Position numbers and translations under genes: made by a program
The notes under the pieces: model-generated
Told to the model about the DNA's origin: nothing
What the model saw: the letters and a program-made list of their open reading frames with translations, nothing else
Databases searched by the model: none
DNA from: Dimorphilus gyrociliatus
Lineage: Eukaryota; Animalia; Annelida
DNA length: 64,000 nucleotides
Direction: 5' to 3'
NCBI GenBank assembly: GCA_904063045.1
Contig: CAJFCJ010000003.1
Span: forward strand, 1,488,001 to 1,552,000
Shown here: piece by piece, positions 32,977 to 41,034 of the stretch
How the letters are laid out: each line of letters opens with the position of its first letter
How positions within the stretch are numbered: position 1 is the stretch's first letter

Positions 32977-33555
32977 TTACATAATACAACATGACCCTGA
33001 CTCTGATGTTTTGCCAGATTCTTCTTCATTAACTTTCTTTGGTATCTGATTCTTTTCTGGCGGACATTCTGTTGCTTTCTTTGGTTCATTTTGCTCTTCT
33101 TTATTTCCATCTGTATTATCTTCTTGCTTCTTTAATTGATCGGATTTGTTTACTTTATTAGTTTGAACTCTACTAGGTGTCGGTATCCTAGAAACTTTTG
33201 ATGCTGATTTCTTATCAGAAAGAGTAAACGTGATGGGTTTTGAATTGTTAGGTGTAATATGTTTATCACGCGGTGTGGTATTAGGAGTGAAGAACTCATC
33301 AGAATCTTCAATTTTTGGTTTTTTTGCTTTCCCAGTAGACATACCCTTACGTCGCTTCATAGAAGTTACTGGGGTCTTAAAGATTTCATCGGGAGTACCC
33401 ATAGTTTTGACACAATCTTCTACCATCACCTTACATGGTGTAATCTTAATGTCACTATTTTTTTCTTTTCTTGGTATTTTCGATCGAGGACGTTTTTTCC
33501 GCTTGGGATAGTTTTTTGGGTCCACAGAGCTCTCCTCTGTTTGCGGATGAAACAT
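32977..33555 (-). CDS. Orphan ~192-aa basic, disordered protein ending in the CaaX motif CCIM
   Basis: Single long open exon with AAAATG at 33555. Basic clusters PKRKKRPR and KRRK; many TP sites; C-terminus GSCCIM*. The upstream splice-site-like sequences I tried did not give an open coding extension, so the start is uncertain. Confidence 0.6.
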   Translation of the reverse strand: MFHPQTEESSVDPKNYPKRKKRPRSKIPRKEKNSDIKITPCKVMVEDCVKTMGTPDEIFKTPVTSMKRRKGMSTGKAKKPKIEDSDEFFTPNTTPRDKHITPNNSKPITFTLSDKKSASKVSRIPTPSRVQTNKVNKSDQLKKQEDNTDGNKEEQNEPKKATECPPEKNQIPKKVNEEESGKTSESGSCCIM

Positions 33556-34185
33556 TTTTGGTTGAGCAATATAAATACTACGTCTAGTCCGTCGCAATTC
33601 AATTCCTTCCGCTAAATTGTTGCTTGGAACAAAGATTGACTTTTGTCTACGAGAAAAAAAACAATTTAAACTTATTTTCTGTGAGATCTCACAAACTCCG
33701 GATCACCTTTGCTTTAATTTATTTCCTTCAGGCATGTAAATAAAAAAATATCCAGTATTTAAGTAATAGTAAAAGCTGCAATTTGCGGTTAAAGTGTTTC
33801 TTTTAAAAATGGCATTATACCTATTCATGAATATAATGATATTTTCGATATAAGATCGCTGATTTATGTTATAAATTTACATAGATCGATTTAAAACGAT
33901 ATATATCGATATGGAAATTTATTCATTAACATTCAAATCTGAATGATGATTTGTCAACTTGAAATTGCTCGACCAATAGCCTTCCTAAGTGAACGTTATA
34001 CGACTCTATACACAACGGACTACTTTTTGTATGGCAGTTTCCATAAAATAAGGGGTTGGAGTGTGATCGAGTATTGGGGACAGATGAATAATTTCCAGGT
34101 AATTAATGACACTATTGTTTTGAAAGAACTTTTTTGAAATCAATTTTTTTCAATTTATATGACGAACTATTTACAGCAGCGTATT

Positions 34186-34219
34186 TTCAAATTTGAAAGT
34201 AAAGGACTAGCGCGGCAAA
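34186..34219. promoter_or_regulatory. Candidate cell-cycle promoter module: back-to-back CHR elements (TTCAAA/TTTGAA) and an E2F site (reverse complement TTTGCCGCGC)
   Basis: ttcaaa-tttgaa at 34186-34197 and gcgcggcaaa at 34210-34219, about 200 bp upstream of the Ki-67-like ATG. CHR hexamers are common in AT-rich DNA. Confidence 0.4.
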
Positions 34220-34416
34220 GAAAAATAGCGGCAATATTTTTTGAGCGCTTTTTAATGATAAGAACCTTCTTTTTAGGTTTAAAGCTCCTTAAATTTTTTA
34301 ACTACCTTGGAAGATTCTCCAGGATAAACCTAATTGTCATTGAAGAATATTCAATCAAGTAGCAGCAGTTGATCAGATTTATTACTCCTCGTTTCGTGTG
34401 ATTCCGATTTGTCGTG

Positions 34417-37400
34417 ATGGCTAGCACTGCTCGTTGTATAGGTAAAGTAGCCGTACTAAACAGTAAAGGGGTTAGAAGAAATAGCTTTGCCACATCGGCC
34501 TCTATAATGACGTTTGGCAGGTATTGCTGATTTTGAAACCAAAGATGTTATTGCAGACTCATAATTTCCTGTTTTAGTAATGAATCGTGTGATGTACGCT
34601 TGCTAAAACCGCACATACCAGACTTGTTTTTCTCATTGATAATTAACTACAATAACAAAACGGTGAGTTCCTTTGAATTTCTGGACTAGAAGTCTCGGAT
34701 AACATTTGTAGATAGTGCTCAAACTCAATTTGAGGTGTTTACTAAACATGTCTATTTTTTATAATTAGGCCTATATCAGAAAGGAAGCCGAATCCGAAAA
34801 AAGAAATCTTTTGGTCAATGACAAACCAATAAGGGAAGAAACGGAATACTATATTAAATCGGGGGATAAATTTGGGGTGGACGGCGGCTTTTTCATTTTC
34901 GACTTTGATAATAAACAGCGAAGATCGTCTTGTTGCGTTACGCCACTAGAGGTAGTTTTTTTCAATATTGCAAACTAAGATTAATACTAATTTAAGTCAT
35001 TTAATTGGAATTTTTATAGGAGGATATGGCACAATTCAGAGATGATATTAAAGATACTCCAAAAGGTAAAAAAGCTGATCAAGTTGTAACCAAGCTATCG
35101 AAAAATCGAGCAATGATAGAGAGTAATCAAATTGAAAGGGTTGATGATAACTTCGATGCAAAAACACCTGGCTTTAAATCTGTTTCATTTGCTCCAGAAG
35201 TCTCACCTGAGGTTTTTATAGTTTCTATTGATTTTTACTTTCTAATTTTTTCAAAAATTCAATAGATATTTGATAAACGACTTCCTCCCAATACTCCTAT
35301 TAGGAGAGGATCGGCACCTCCTCAAATTGTAGGGAGTGCATCAAAGAGATCGTCACTTAAAGCGCCAGTTGCCACGAGTTCGATTAATGATTCTGAGAAT
35401 GCTGTCCCTCTCCATGCGATAGAAACAAAGCGTCGCTCGGAAAGATTTTCCAAGTCAAACACGTCGCTGATAAACCCATCATTAGGTTCCATTATGGAAT
35501 CACCTGTTTCTGATGATGGGAACAATGATGTAGCTATAACAGAGAGCGAATTAGATAATCCACAAGAGAATGACAGCAAGCAAGCAGTTGAGAGGGAAGG
35601 AAAAGACGAAGTTGACGATCTACAACTAGAAATGACACCAAAAAAGCTAAAAAGTGGACCAACAACACCAAGTAAAAAGTGCCCAATACCTTTAAGAGAT
35701 TTTACAGAAACATTACAAGAGAAGAGCGAAGGCAAGGTCTCGCCTGAGATAACCGCAACTAAACCCGAACCCCGAAAAACCCCAGAAAAGCGAAGATCAC
35801 TTAGAGTAACAGAGAAGAAACTAAATGAAGAAAAAGAACTGAAAAATGAAGAGAAGGAAGTGAAGAATGAAGAAAAGGAACTGAAAAATGAAGAGAGGAA
35901 AGTAAAGAATAAAGAAATAGAACTGATGACTGAGGGAAAGAAATTAAATGATAAAGAGAAGGAAGAGTCTGAGAGTATCAATGTGGAAGAAAAATCAGAT
36001 GATCACATTGAAGCATCGTCAGAAATAAAGCACAAAAGTGTAAAGTTGGTAGTTCCAAGTCCCGAGAGAAAACAGATGACTCCTGACGTAAATGTTACAC
36101 CGAAAGCATCCACAGCAGATGATGAAACTATGTCAAAACGGAGAAGTTCCTCTCGTAGGAAAAAAAGCCTTCCAAGAACTCCAACGCCTGCAGTTCGAAG
36201 AACAAGATCTACCCTTTCCGAGACGTATGGATCGGATATGGATAAAATTGAGGAATCAATAGAAGAAGAAGCTGAGAGTGAATCTAATCAAATTTTAAAT
36301 CCAGAAGAGGAAGGAACACCAAAGAAAAAAGGTTCTCTGAATGAAGAGCCTTTAAGCCCTTCAAGTTTGCCATGTAAGTTAGACTTATCTGATTCACAAG
36401 ATGAAGATGAGAAAGACGAAAACAATGCGAAGCCTGATTATGATAAAATTGAAATCGAAGTAATGGATACTGAAACAGCCGAGGAAAAAGAGGATAGTGA
36501 CAAGGAATCGTTAGAACCTTCCTATGATAATGAAGTGTACGAAGAAAAATCAGAGGACACTATGGAAACTGGAACTTCCAATAGTGAAGAAAATGGGAAA
36601 GAATCAGAATCGGAGGTAATTGATACTAACAAATTAACAAAGAAGGAAAGAGATGAGGTCAGAGCAAGACGTCGATCAAGCTTTAGTGTTCGAGAGGAGA
36701 CTACTAAAACTCCAAATGCTTCTCGCATGGTTGCAATGAGAGCCATTAAAGGAGTAAATATACACAAACCAAAAGCGCCAAAAACGGATAAAAGACAGTC
36801 TAAAACACCTAAAACACTATGGTCACACGTAATTACTAAAGGATTGGATGAAGCGGCTTTCAAAACAGAAGAATTAAATAAAACAGAAAAATTAACATCG
36901 AAAGTAAAATCTAAGAAAAGTCGAATGGAGAAAGAAATATCTGTAAGATTTCATTCCAATACTGAACTATATTTAATACTTGATTTTCCACATAGAAAAC
37001 CCCCGCTAATATTCGTATGAAATTGGGTGCAGCTGCTTCTACTGGTCATGCGGAATCACCATCAACTATTTACATTAATAAGAAAATTTCAAGCCATATA
37101 AAGTTAAATGATACTGATAGTAACACTAGTAGTAGTGAGGTAAAATATCACTTGTTCAATTTTATATTGTGTTATATTTCTTATATTGATTTATTCAGAT
37201 TTCCTACTCTGACCTACCACCAACCCCAGATCCTCCAAGTAGTCCGAATGTATCACCGCTGTCTGTATGTAGAAAAAGTACATCTCCTTCTACTTCAGCG
37301 ATGCTAAGAACTGTAGAGGAAGGAACTGTTACAATTTCGGCATCTCCAAAATTAATTTCTCAAAAGAATGAAGAAGAAACTAAAACAGAAGATGTTTACT

Positions 37401-39572
37401 ATTATGGTGTCAGGGAAGTGTTCAATCCCAAAAATGAAAAGACTCCCAGAGTAATAAGAATTAAAGAGCTCTTCTCGTCAAACGAAGACGAAGTTCGCCA
37501 ATCGCCTAAACTGAATGGTTTAAGAAATTTGCTTTTAACTCCAAAAATTAAAGGTTCAATTATTTCAAATTTATAGAAATATTAATTATTATGATATTTT
37601 CCCAAATTGTTTATTAGCTTCTATTAATGATATCGAGAAAAATTACGTGGGCATTAAAGAATTACTTCACGAAGAATCGATTCAGAATTCTCCAGTTTTA
37701 ATAGGAGTAAAAGAGTTGCTGAAAGTCGACAAAGAAAAGGTTGATAAAGAATTGGATATTCGCCCACTATTTCAAGAGGATGAAACAGTGCAAAATTCAC
37801 CAGATTTAAGAGGTATTAGGGAGATGTATTTGGAGCAGACTAAGGATTCGGATATAGATGACAGTGTCCTAGAAAGTATCCCAACGATGTTCGAAAGGAA
37901 CGGGCCGCCGATAGAAATGCAGGATCTTGAAGATGATAATTCTTCTAGCACGATGAACGAGGACGCTTCGTCGCCAACAAAAAGTGATCAGAAAAGAAAT
38001 GTACGTTTCGCTGAGTTTAATGAAGTTTTCCCAGTAACTCCACATAAATTAAAAAGATCTGAGAGAGTAAAAAATATGCAGGTATCCCCCGAAGAGGAGG
38101 AGGAAGATCCTATGGAGGAGTTTGACGAGCAGCCGAAGCCAAAGAAGAAAAGGGTAGCTAAGGGTAGGGGTAGAAAGGCTAAAGTCAAGAGCGCTTCAGA
38201 TGAAGATACAGAGACTAAATCAGTAAAGAAAGCGAACACGCGACGAAAAAAGATACAGGAAAAAGACGATAAGTATAACAAAACTGAAGAAAATGAATTA
38301 ATTGTAGATAAAAATAAAAATGCTGAGTTGGAGGAAGAAAAGAAAGAAAATTCGCCTTCAAAAGTTGAGGAAACACCTATAGTAGAACAAATTTTAACGA
38401 AAGAGGACAAAAATGAAGAAAAAGATAACGAGGAATCGAGTAAAAATATCGAGAAAATTCCTGAAAAAATTGAGAAAAAGAAGCAAACGCGTCGCAAAGT
38501 TAAAGCTAAAGCTATGGAGGAAGACGTAATTGACAAACAGAGTACCGAAAAAGAGGAAAACTCTGAAAAAGATCTACCTTTGTCAACGCCTCAAAAAGAT
38601 CCCAAGGTTACTAAATTAACAGATAAACTAGCTGATTCTCCAGCTCGCAATACTCGACGACGAGCAAAAATGCTAAAAGACGAGGAAAGCCTTGATTCAG
38701 GATCTGTGAAGAAAGCTAATAAAGTTTTAGAACTACCTGATGATTCTGAGCCTGTCAATAAACGAGTAAGCAAAAGAAACCTCAAAGAAGCCGATACCAA
38801 AGTGAAGAAAGCTGGAAGGTCTAAAACACATATGGAATCAAAAGATGAAGCAGACTGCGTTGAAGAACCTAAGAAGAAGAGTCGAATTGTAAGAAAAAAT
38901 AAAAAGGTATCTATCCCTGATGAAGTGATAGTGATCTCTGATACGGAAGATACACTAGCAGAAGTAAAAAAGAAAGCTCCTCGTAGAACAGCAAGAAAGC
39001 CTGCTTCTGAGAAAATGACCGAAGAAGACTCAACAGAGATGGAAAAACCAACATCGAAAGCAGATAAATATGTCGATAATAGTACATCAAAATCGCCAAA
39101 TGAAAAATTTAAAGGTAGAAAGAGAAAGAATATAGAGCCGATTATATCGTCAGAGAAGGACTTGACCGATTCCGTATCTCCATCACAGTCGAAAAAAACA
39201 ACAAGAGGTGGCAAGCAAACCAAAAATATTTTGCCTGAAGAGGTTGCTGAGCACGAAGACGAAAGTAAGCAAAAGAAAGCCCCAGCCAGAGGTAAAAGAA
39301 AAGCCAAGATGGAGAGTCAGGAAGTGGTTCCAGATAAAATTGAAGAAGATAAGAAGAGGCCTGTAAGAAGCTCTAAAAGATCAAAGCCTACTGTTGCTGT
39401 AATATCGGAGGAGGAGGAGCATGGAAAGACCTCAGTGAAAAAATCGTCGACGAAAGGAAGAAAGAGAAAACCTTCCGGGGATGAATTGGAAACTCGGTCC
39501 ATCAAGCAAAAAACAACTGAAGAAGTGCAGGAAAAGCCTAGAGGAAGAGGGCGACCGAGAAAGCAGAAATAG
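34417..39572 (+). CDS. MKI67: Ki-67 (MKI67)/Repo-Man family protein, about 1,564 aa (exons 34417-34520, 34578-34662, 34769-34951, 35020-35211, 35266-36942, 36996-37139, 37199-37553, 37618-39572)
   Basis: FHA-like N-terminus (IGKVAVLNSKG...TFGSNESCDVRL...LLVNDKPI...IKSGDKFGVDGGFFIF). PP1-binding domain KSVSFAPEVSPE|IFDKRLPPNTPIRRGSAP (human RRRVSFGGHLRPELFDENLPPNTPLKRGEAP). Conserved-domain motifs LWSHVITKG and STGHAESPSTIYI. GxKELF-type repeats; basic tail with AT-hook. All eight exons join in frame via GT-AG. Confidence 0.85.
35824..35928 (+). repeat. In-frame 21-nt (7-aa, NEEKE[LV]K) tandem repeat, 5 units, inside the Ki-67-like gene
   Basis: aatgaagaaaaagaactgaaa / aatgaagagaaggaagtgaag / aatgaagaaaaggaactgaaa / aatgaagagaggaaagtaaag / aataaagaaatagaactgatg. 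Confidence 0.9.
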
Positions 39573-41034
39573 CGAGTGACTAAAATTATTCCTAATTAGC
39601 ATTGTGCTTAATGTAGGTGTTATTTTAGTTTTTTTTAAATGTTCCTGTTTTAACTCTCAAGCTGTTTTTCATCAAATTTTTCTATCGATGAAAGTTATTA
39701 GAATATGATAATTTTATTATAACCTTTTTCAAGTCTATTTTGGTTGATGAAAACACGTTCATGCGATTCTTTATTCAATAAAAGTTGTAATGTTGCTAAA
39801 AACGTTAAAGTTGAAGATAATGATTCCTATTTATTTTAAATTTTGCGGAAAGGTTTACTAATGTAATCTTTTAAATCATAACTAATCGATTTGCTAGAAC
39901 AAAACATGGTGTGATGGGCCGTTTGATAAATATTGATTATTTGAATAAAAATACTCGTAAATAAGACATCAAATTCAAGGCAAAGCCAACTTTTGATTTT
40001 AATAGAATAACAAGTCATAAGCAATCAATAAGATTTACTACAGCATAAATAGGATTAAAAATTTGCTAAATATTTTCTAAATTATCGGTTATGTGTCAGG
40101 TGCGGAAAATGCTCCAGGTGTTAAAAACAATAACAATATTAGATAGCGATTACATTTGATATTTTTATAGCAACCCTTCGTCAAAAGTTCATTGAAAAAT
40201 CTGTGAAGCTTTTATATTAGTGTGTTTAAAGTTCATTTCCCCTCTATTTTGATCTTTTAATATACTTGTTTATAATATTTGGTATTAGAAAGCTTTATTC
40301 TCCGCGTAACAATCGACAAAAAAATCTTAAAGAATGACATATTTTAAGCTTGGCCTAAATTACATAATCTTTTTATTACTATAAAAAAACGATCGTTAGT
40401 GCTTGTACTTTTGCACAAACCGTGAGAGTATGTAGTGTATCACTTTTATGTTAAACTTATGTATGTATATATATATTATATGTATATATAATATAAATAT
40501 ATAATTATAAATATTGATCTAATTTGCATGAACAGGTTTTAGTAAAAACGCGTACAACGATCGAAAAACATACTGTATATGTATGTCGCTTTAGTAAAAG
40601 CAACTGATAAAAAAGATGACTTACGACAATCAAGCCAAACTTCACCGTAATACAAGTACGCGTCTTGTCATATGATAATCAGTTAATTAACATTTGTCGT
40701 CATTGTTGTATATACAGTATAAGCTCTAAGTACAATTTGGACAAATACACCTGCAAGAAATATACACACAATATATATCACATATATATACGTATATATA
40801 CATATATGTATTTATATATATATGCGTTAATATGTAATATTAGTTCTACGCATAAAAGGAATTTACTAAGCAATGACTAATACTTTCGAAAGCCTGTCCT
40901 TTTACTCCCGCCATTTCAATCAAGTGATTTTTCGGATACTATTTTTTATGTACAGTTGACAGCCGATCCGCAAAATACGTTCAAGTATGACTTGGCAGAA
41001 GAAAGAAATGTTCAAGTTCACCATATAGATGGCG

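Follow-up and report, generated by a model that had tools for sequence, protein, structure and literature searches.

The locus at positions 34,417 to 39,572 of the 64-kb window (the whole stretch of Dimorphilus gyrociliatus DNA analysed) encodes a protein that is likely a member of the Ki-67-like family. This identification draws on an FHA fold, an RVxF + KiR-SLiM module for docking protein phosphatase 1 (PP1), a charged chain, tandem repeats and a basic, AT-hook-like tail. These elements follow one another as in Ki-67, as the preliminary description of this DNA had claimed: FHA, PP1 docking, a long and probably disordered region with short repeats, and the basic AT-hook-like tail.

A transcribed eight-exon gene and its upstream region

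The locus is a real, expressed eight-exon gene, already public but without a functional name. The gene and the elements upstream of it are as follows.

34417..39572, + strand: whole coding region, 8 exons and 7 introns (53-106 nt), 1,564 aa
34417-34520, 34578-34662, 34769-34951, 35020-35211, 35266-36942, 36996-37139, 37199-37553 and 37618-39572, + strand: exons, GT..AG, in frame
34160..34243, no strand assigned: conserved promoter block with CHR-like and E2F-like elements, ~200 nt upstream of the ATG
34186-34197, no strand assigned: palindromic CHR-like TTCAAATTTGAA, a 12-mer unique in the 64-kb window (0.06 expected)
34212-34219, minus strand: E2F-like TTTGCCGC, a sequence match
near 33973, no strand assigned: CCAAT box, a sequence match

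The spliced coding sequence is 4,695 nt long, that is 1,564 codons and a stop, and a TGA lies in frame 18 nt 5' of the ATG. All seven junctions, placed just as in the gene model, are present on a single 7,298-nt contig from one RNA run (100% identical); exons 1-4 and exons 5-8 therefore lie on one RNA and not on different transcripts, which rules out two separate genes. A second RNA run, from a different study and 95-99% identical, showed five of these junctions. The encoded protein is identical to CAD5113037.1 / A0A7I8VBH4 ("DgyrCDS2237", Dimorphilus gyrociliatus), and an exon-by-exon check placed each translation in order and gap-free within this public 1,564-aa protein, on which all full-length protein tests were then run. 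The GT..AG model, the transcript contig and the public protein thus agree with the preliminary description, in which eight exons were joined in frame to about 1,564 aa. The strings quoted there were all found in the order given: KSVSF...PEIFDKRLPPNTPIRRG (exons 4/5), LWSHVITKG, STGHAESPSTI, the repeat region and the C-terminal RGRGRPRK. The splitting of the gene in the ORF track comes only from a prokaryote-style ORF list, which is unable to join exons.

An orthologue in a related dinophilid genome retains all exons, the motif blocks and identical splice positions, with identities of 77, 93, 72, 56, 51, 69, 69 and 45% for exons 1 to 8. Per-exon identity, splice positions and invariant motif blocks together indicate that the named modules are under purifying selection. 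With about 50% divergence in the disordered parts, this comparison singles out a few short motifs that do not vary, namely the PP1 module, the RRKKSLPRTPTPAVRRTRS and W..V.TKG/STGHAESP blocks, the FKELF-like repeats, the second block with an RVxF match and the AT-hook end. More distant relatives were not recovered. A word search with exon 5 found one close relative, an exhaustive representative search with the same exon found only the public protein itself and one other protein, and word searches with residues 1-240 and 692-790 each returned only the public protein. Only one close species was thus found with these three queries, so that orthology to any named Ki-67 stays putative. The neighbouring gene has no Pfam match.

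The promoter block is also kept in the non-coding DNA of the related dinophilid genome. CHR/CDE sites are reported to control the vertebrate gene MKI67 (PMC8629999), and the CHR/E2F/CCAAT-like block suggests cell-cycle-linked transcription.

The PP1-docking module and the N-terminal FHA fold

Two modules occupy the N-terminal part of the protein.

34417..34951, + strand: FHA-fold domain, exons 1-3, residues 1-124, with degenerate phosphothreonine-binding residues
35176..35373, + strand: PP1-docking module, residues 177-224, RVxF (KSVSF) followed by FDKRLPPNTPIRRGSAP matching the KiR-SLiM; interrupted by intron 4 (35212-35265)

The PP1-docking region proposed earlier was confirmed at the profile level: residues 177-224 match Pfam PP1_bind (PF15276) at 43.9 bits (E 2.7e-11), above the curated cut-off of 27 bits. 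The best PDB sequence matches are PP1-bound peptides, with human Ki-67 (5J28, 28.0 bits) and CDCA2, or Repo-Man (5INB, 27.8 bits), nearly level. Measured against the RVxF + KiR-SLiM definition, FDxxLP(P/A)N(T/S)PL(R/K)(R/K)Gx(T/S)P (PMC5005033), 13 of the 15 specified positions are kept, the departures being I in place of L and A in place of T/S. The module is 100% conserved in the related dinophilid genome. Exon by exon, the Pfam scan touched PP1_bind with exon 5 alone (25.1 bits, slightly below the cut-off), and the PDB search gave a weak match of exon 5 to Ki-67 5J28 and none for exons 3 and 4. Within the module, S186 and T198 are S-P/T-P sites. Because the residue two before the RVxF serine is non-basic, this protein may lack the Aurora-B switch that has been described in human Ki-67.

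We further considered whether the locus is a single undivided gene of Ki-67/Repo-Man type, co-orthologous to both vertebrate genes and doing both jobs. A six-frame, exon-by-exon search of the 77.9-Mb genome found only one PP1_bind locus (exon 5 alone, 30.3 bits), although a diverged second copy may escape such a search; this single locus is the one basis of the "pre-duplication" reading put forward earlier, which is compatible with the data and unproven. The near-equal scores of the docking peptide against human Ki-67 and CDCA2 point the same way. A CDCA2-like gene may, however, just have dropped out of so compact a genome, and the SHOOT tree of a June 2026 preprint (bioRxiv 10.64898/2026.06.18.733134) has a separate CDCA2 branch, its taxonomic depth not given. 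We place this refinement of the Ki-67-like identification somewhat below an even chance.

For the N-terminus, several modest lines of evidence from sequence, structural model and language model support an FHA fold. A phmmer search matched the Dun1 FHA domain over residues 6-109 (E 0.048). The predicted structure has low confidence (mean pLDDT 56); with it, the best 50 Foldseek matches were all FHA domains, and in a comparison with 48,161 PDB representative chains 49 of the 50 best matches were FHA domains (Z 5.1-7.2). VIA-align reached Z 7.8, with an rmsd of 2.6 A over 90 residues. Protein language-model neighbours were FHA clusters (score 0.91). Exons 1-3 are also the most conserved exons between the two dinophilids (72-93%). 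The FHA-like domain of the preliminary description thus stands as a fold, while its profile and its pocket do not: Pfam FHA (PF00498) gave no match to the full-length protein even at E 10, and the canonical phosphothreonine-binding residues are absent. Aligned with Dun1, the protein has S35, P, a gap and R where the canonical Arg, Ser, His and Asn would stand (G-R becoming G-S35), and the same replacements occur in the related dinophilid genome and in the second RNA run. Classical phosphothreonine binding has probably been lost. The domain is spread over three exons and is not visible in the per-exon Pfam scan.

These features bear on whether the protein could be a lineage-specific PP1 scaffold non-orthologous to Ki-67, that is, a Repo-Man-like or other PP1_bind protein with an unrelated or degenerate FHA-like beta-sandwich. 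The FHA domain has no specific sequence likeness to that of Ki-67: its best match is yeast Dun1, neither human Ki-67 FHA structure (1R21 or 2AFF) was matched by sequence at E 10, and the human Ki-67 FHA is structurally tied with many others (Z 6.6, the best being 7.8). The missing canonical FHA residues, the missing Pfam KI67R match and the atypical net charge fit such a scaffold as well. Against it, the top sequence identity among the Foldseek FHA matches listed belongs to human Ki-67 (20-21%), the order and spacing of the modules fit the non-vertebrate Ki-67 homologues listed in the preprint, and the KiR-SLiM has been reported only in Ki-67 and Repo-Man (PMC5005033), the latter without an FHA domain. 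We regard such a scaffold as unlikely. In NIPP1 (PPP1R8)-type proteins, too, an N-terminal FHA stands ahead of an RVxF site, and the NIPP1 FHA is among the structural matches (Z 5.5). It ranks low there, and the PP1 module here goes beyond a bare RVxF in fitting PF15276 with a KiR-SLiM. NIPP1 is also only ~350 aa long, against 1,564 aa here; on the KiR-SLiM and the size, we reject a NIPP1 identity as highly improbable.

Short motifs and charge along the chain

Beyond the docking module, the Ki-67-like protein carries further conserved elements.

36772..37082, + strand: basic conserved block, residues ~691-776, net +12, TLWSHVITKG and STGHAESPSTI; crosses intron 5 (36943-36995)
37397..37835, + strand: seven tandem ~19-aa repeats, residues 862-986, core [ILV][KR][ENP][LMV][FLY]; cross intron 7 (37554-37617)
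37992..38102, + strand: second strongly conserved block, residues ~1039-1075, opening with a second RVxF-type match, RNVRF
39228..39569, + strand: basic C-terminal tail, residues 1451-1564, net +12, pI 10.0, ending PRGRGRPRKQK
39537-39569, + strand: AT-hook-like end PRGRGRPRKQK with a GRP core, a sequence motif

The TLWSHVITKG/STGHAESPSTI block, which holds the conserved-domain motifs named in the preliminary description, is near-identical in the related dinophilid genome, and an Atlas feature search with residues 690-990 gave no usable match. The repeat core occurs at seven sites, all within residues 866-980 and spaced 17-23 aa apart, where shuffles expect 0.19 for this pattern, chosen post hoc. 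Its Φ-K/R-E-L-F core resembles the human FKELF motif, and the human Ki-67 motif core itself gave 9 sites scoring at least 14 against 2.5 expected (P 0.0006). The Ki-67-like repeat region claimed earlier is thus borne out by the seven FKELF-like repeats and not by Pfam KI67R (PF08065), which had no match at E 10 in the protein. KI67R was also silent across the genome, a weak negative because controls gave no match either. The profile derives from the repeats of vertebrates, and non-vertebrate homologues are not expected to require a match to it. An hNIFK_binding profile likewise found no match in the genome, again a weak negative. The RVxF regular expression matched only at residues 177 and 1040; the block around the latter is almost invariant between the dinophilids and belongs to no Pfam family.

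From these likenesses we tentatively propose that the protein may hold sequence-level counterparts of the vertebrate Ki-67 FKELF motif, condensed to seven ~19-aa repeats, and of the vertebrate "conserved domain" (W..V.K.G ... STGHA.SP.TI); on balance we hold this to be rather doubtful. Were they truly homologous, both short motifs would be older than the protostome-deuterostome split and would mark functional cores in a protein whose disordered part is said to lack conserved sequence. In that case the protein would also show that Ki-67 can work near-neutral in net charge and with an FHA domain lacking its phosphothreonine pocket.

The whole protein is near neutral (pI 7.88, net charge about 0 to +3 or 0.002 per residue, D+E 19.8%). 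Charged residues make up 0.40 of the chain, which contains 11 full CDK sites and 40 S/T-P sites, or 1 per 39 aa, close to the 1 per 35 aa of human Ki-67 (Table 1, bioRxiv 10.64898/2026.06.18.733134). On composition rather than a disorder tool, the long chain outside the modules is probably disordered. Its charge is polarised, with an acidic N-terminal half (residues 241-690, net -27) and a basic C-terminal third (residues 1076-1564, net +29). The earlier claim of a strongly basic tail with an AT-hook therefore holds for the C-terminal third and for the tail ending in RGRGRPRK; the protein overall is not basic. The last 13 residues are identical in the related dinophilid genome, and the tail has no Pfam or PDB match.

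Predicted function and comparison with known systems

By this architecture, the RVxF + KiR-SLiM, ~50 residues past the FHA domain, would dock PP1; the chain that follows, ~1,300 residues rich in charge and probably disordered, carries the 40 S/T-P sites and the seven repeats. If the protein works as vertebrate Ki-67 does, its basic tail would attach to chromatin or DNA, with the acidic N-terminal half extending outwards, and PP1 would be brought to chromosomes as cells leave mitosis; phosphorylation by CDK at S186, T198 and the S-P/T-P sites of the chain may gate PP1 binding and charge.

With this identification, a public protein that carries no functional name, from a tiny annelid whose genome is among the most compact of any animal, would gain one. 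The view that invertebrate relatives are little characterised has been overtaken by the June 2026 preprint, which lists non-vertebrate Ki-67 homologues including one from the annelid Capitella (bioRxiv 10.64898/2026.06.18.733134); the Dimorphilus protein would be the second annelid in that set, with an unusual charge profile. Its invariant short motifs are concrete mutagenesis targets, and the protein could serve as a proliferation marker in Dimorphilus, an emerging model. None of these findings overturns current views.

Vertebrate Ki-67 (MKI67, human P46013, 3,256 aa) is alike in its FHA fold, the downstream RVxF + KiR-SLiM, a long, charged chain with many S/T-P sites, tandem repeats built on an FKELF-like core, a basic C-terminus and CHR/E2F-type promoter elements. 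The Dimorphilus protein is half as long as the human one and less basic (pI 7.9 against 10.2). Its repeats are seven of ~19 aa, lacking a KI67R match, where vertebrate Ki-67 has 16 of ~120 aa, and it ends in an AT-hook-like motif where vertebrate Ki-67 has a demonstrated LR domain. The replaced FHA phosphothreonine-binding residues and the weak hNIFK_binding negative also set it apart.

Repo-Man (CDCA2) has an equally similar docking module, and two of the three CDK1 sites described in it have S-P/T-P counterparts here (S186 and T198), but it lacks FKELF-type repeats as well as the FHA domain, whereas the Dimorphilus protein has an FHA fold.

The non-vertebrate Ki-67 homologues are of the same length class and share the N-terminal FHA, the PP1 motif or Pfam PP1_bind and many S/T-P sites; their FHA + PP1 architecture spans 1,100-2,600 aa, with Ciona at 1,571 aa and Capitella teleta R7U3J4 at 1,547 aa (bioRxiv 10.64898/2026.06.18.733134). 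Short repeats are common to Dimorphilus and Ciona (15 aa x 8 in Ciona). Compared by listed properties rather than direct alignment, the Dimorphilus protein is a near-neutral polyampholyte, whereas those of Capitella (pI 11.7), molluscs and echinoderms are extremely basic, with pI 11.7-12.2 and D+E 4-6.5%. Non-basic homologues from Daphnia, mosquito and Malassezia are listed in the same preprint.

Gene structure and transcripts

The Ki-67-like gene lies in AT-rich animal DNA and comprises eight plus-strand exons with GT..AG borders, separated by introns of 53-106 nt. Their in-frame join is 4,695 nt long (1,564 codons plus stop), and an in-frame TGA stands 18 nt 5' of the ATG.

Exons of the Ki-67-like gene (all from the GT..AG model and transcript)
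34417-34520, plus strand, exon 1
34578-34662, plus strand, exon 2
34769-34951, plus strand, exon 3
35020-35211, plus strand, exon 4
35266-36942, plus strand, exon 5
36996-37139, plus strand, exon 6
37199-37553, plus strand, exon 7
37618-39572, plus strand, exon 8

The stretch with the gene is present in two sequencing runs. In run X2, a single 7,298-nt contig (100% identical) covers 8/8 exons, with the seven introns spliced exactly as modelled. Since one contig crosses all seven junctions, exons 1-4 do not come from a different transcript than exons 5-8. Contigs of run X1, a coral metatranscriptome from a separate study, are 95-99% identical and show five junctions. We then searched proteins exhaustively with the exon 5 translation alone and retrieved CAD5113037.1 (UniProt A0A7I8VBH4, "DgyrCDS2237 [Dimorphilus gyrociliatus]"), a 1,564-aa protein. 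It has exon 5 as residues 189-747 and contains the translations of all eight exons in their proper sequence; the two split codons are those of Ser35 and Ala914. Splice borders, the X2 transcript and this public protein bear out the eight in-frame exons and 1,564 aa of the preliminary description. The gene is thus already correctly modelled in public data, without a functional name; the fragments into which the ORF track was said to split it are real, but only an effect of an intron-blind ORF list.

One low-depth X1 contig splices intron 5 yet retains intron 6 (window 37140-37198). With 2 nt absent at 37167, the retained piece would measure 57 nt and add 19 residues in frame in the X1 strain, while the 59 nt of the window allele would shift the frame; the reference-frame reading has no stop, as read on the window allele rather than on that of X1. 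Run X1 dates from 2024, and since its spliced transcripts keep this identity over window 34200-39800, the coral sample harbours a close strain or sibling of Dimorphilus gyrociliatus.

PP1-docking module and N-terminal fold

Pfam PP1_bind, the profile proposed as a check, matches residues 177-224 of the full protein at 43.9 bits (E 2.7e-11; cut-off 27) and exon 5 alone at 25-30 bits. A search against all PDB sequences gave three significant matches, all PP1-bound peptides of human Ki-67 (5J28, 28.0 bits) or Repo-Man (5INB, 27.8 bits; 5IOH, 27.6 bits). PMC5005033 reports the KiR-SLiM, FDxxLP(P/A)N(T/S)PL(R/K)(R/K)Gx(T/S)P, from Ki-67 and Repo-Man alone. Its Dimorphilus counterpart, FDKRLPPNTPIRRGSAP, keeps 13/15 specified positions and is preceded by the RVxF match KSVSF. 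The S-P and T-P sites at 186 and 198 align with two of three CDK1 sites that are reported (PMC5005033) to prevent Repo-Man from binding PP1. The residue two positions N-terminal of the RVxF serine is not basic, which makes a human-type Aurora-B switch doubtful, judging from the sequence. Altogether, the interpretation given in the preliminary description finds partial support, and we consider it likely that the locus encodes a Ki-67-family PP1-docking chromatin protein.

The N-terminal "FHA-like domain" of the preliminary description holds as a predicted fold. Pfam FHA has no match on the full protein and the PDB sequence search found no match to human Ki-67 FHA; yeast Dun1 was the only FHA sequence match (E 0.048, residues 6-109). 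AlphaFold2 modelled residues 1-128 as all-beta, with low confidence (mean pLDDT 56). With this model, the top 50/50 Foldseek matches were FHA domains, among which human Ki-67 FHA had the highest identity (20-21%); the highest Z in VIA-align was 7.8 (2.6 A rmsd over 90 residues). In an independent scan of 48,161 PDB representatives, 49 of the 50 best-ranked structures were FHA domains, Ki-67 2AFF (Z 6.6) being tied with many others, and language-model neighbours of the region were FHA clusters (score 0.91). We conclude that the predicted N-terminal fold is FHA; it may or may not be of the specific Ki-67 type. Aligned with Dun1, the protein has Gly-Ser35 for the canonical Gly-Arg, and Pro, a gap and Arg at the canonical Ser, His and Asn positions, so that classical phosphothreonine binding has probably been lost. 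The Ser35 codon is split by intron 1 and reads Ser in the transcript, run X1 and the related species. The genome profile search gave no hNIFK_binding match, a weak negative.

Repeats, charge and conserved blocks

Pfam KI67R, also put forward as a check, matches neither the full protein nor the genome, the latter a weak negative. Residues 866-980 instead hold seven units of ~19 aa in tandem, which share the core [ILV][KR][ENP][LMV][FLY]. All 7/7 occurrences of this core in the protein fall inside the array, 17-23 aa apart, against 0.19 expected from shuffles for a pattern set after the data were seen. Scanning with the human Ki-67 motif core EDLAGFKELFQTP (PMC8354752) gave nine sites scoring at least 14 versus 2.5 in shuffles (P 0.0006), five of them in the array; the best single score was not significant (P 0.12). 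A similar array (15 aa x 8, residues 940-1107) occurs in the 1,571-aa Ciona Ki-67-like protein (10.64898/2026.06.18.733134).

The whole protein has a pI of 7.88, a net charge per residue of 0.002, 40% charged residues and 40 S/T-P sites. Net charge is -27 over residues 241-690 and +29 over residues 1076-1564. The "strongly basic tail" is borne out by the last 50 residues (net +12, terminus PRGRGRPRKQK); with near-zero net charge overall, the protein is nevertheless a polar polyampholyte, not a basic protein. The strings LWSHVITKG and STGHAESPSTI are indeed present; they lie within residues 691-780, a basic block of net charge +12 that may resemble the vertebrate Ki-67 conserved domain.

With exon 5 as query, a word search retrieved a single relative, P0001 (51% identity), encoded at locus L001 on a 131-kb Logan contig of a related dinophilid. 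All eight exons are kept there, with the same order, splice positions and phases, at 77, 93, 72, 56, 51, 69, 69 and 45% identity for exons 1-8. (Near-)invariant are the FHA exons, the whole 32-residue PP1 module, RRKKSLPRTPTPAVRRTRSTLS, QSKTPKTLWSHVITKGLD, KLGAAASTGHAESPSTIYINK, most repeat cores, the last 13 residues and a block headed by KRNVRFAEF, the only other RVxF match (residue 1040). This second site, RNVRF, opens a ~35-residue block (…FAEF.EVFPVTPHKLKRSERVKN…; window 37992-38102, residues ~1039-1075) with an acidic run after it; the block loosely resembles the first PP1 module and has no PP1_bind score. Between the blocks, substitutions, insertions and deletions are free, as one would expect where a disordered protein carries short functional motifs. 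Both species share upstream neighbours (Arm-repeat gene fragments and ribosomal L35Ae; L001 1-3000 and the further loci L002 and L003) and a downstream TSC22-domain gene, placing the locus within a conserved syntenic block.

About 200 nt 5' of the ATG, a block conserved in L001 non-coding DNA carries a palindromic CHR-like TTCAAATTTGAA, occurring once in the window versus 0.06 expected, and E2F-like TTTSSCGC sites; a CCAAT box lies farther upstream. Human MKI67 is described in PMC8629999 as controlled by CHR and CDE sites, and taken with the conserved block this makes cell-cycle-linked transcription a reasonable inference. A head-to-head minus-strand gene occupies window 32977-33646 and about 34306-34362. 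The X2 contig 5' of 34306 runs on into sequence equal to window 33617-33646, skipping 33647-34305, whose CT..AC ends are those of a minus-strand GT..AG intron. The lysine-rich ORF of this neighbour (206 aa; minus strand, 32977-33597) corresponds in position to one of 217 aa in L001, and neither belongs to a Pfam family. Because the neighbour's 5' exon and the 5' end of the Ki-67-like gene overlap, the promoter block may serve both.

Probable place in the Ki-67 family

Ki-67 has been described as identifiable in vertebrates, with Repo-Man a probable duplicate of its gene (PMC8354752). This is the only PP1_bind locus that we found in the 77.9-Mb genome, and it scores equally to Ki-67 and CDCA2, which is compatible with the suggested pre-duplication Ki-67/Repo-Man gene; loss of a second gene in a reduced genome is equally possible. 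A June 2026 preprint (10.64898/2026.06.18.733134) used the FHA domain and InterPro to list Ki-67-like proteins across non-vertebrates, including the annelid Capitella (R7U3J4, 1,547 aa, pI 11.7), Ciona, molluscs, cnidarians and Drosophila. Dimorphilus is absent from its table, and the locus is thus a further member of a known family. Within it, the Dimorphilus member stands out in three respects, one being its degenerate FHA pocket. While Capitella, mollusc and echinoderm Ki-67-like proteins are extremely basic, that of Dimorphilus is near-neutral, and although the preprint describes conservation outside the FHA domain as generally absent, Dimorphilus shows motif-level conservation there.
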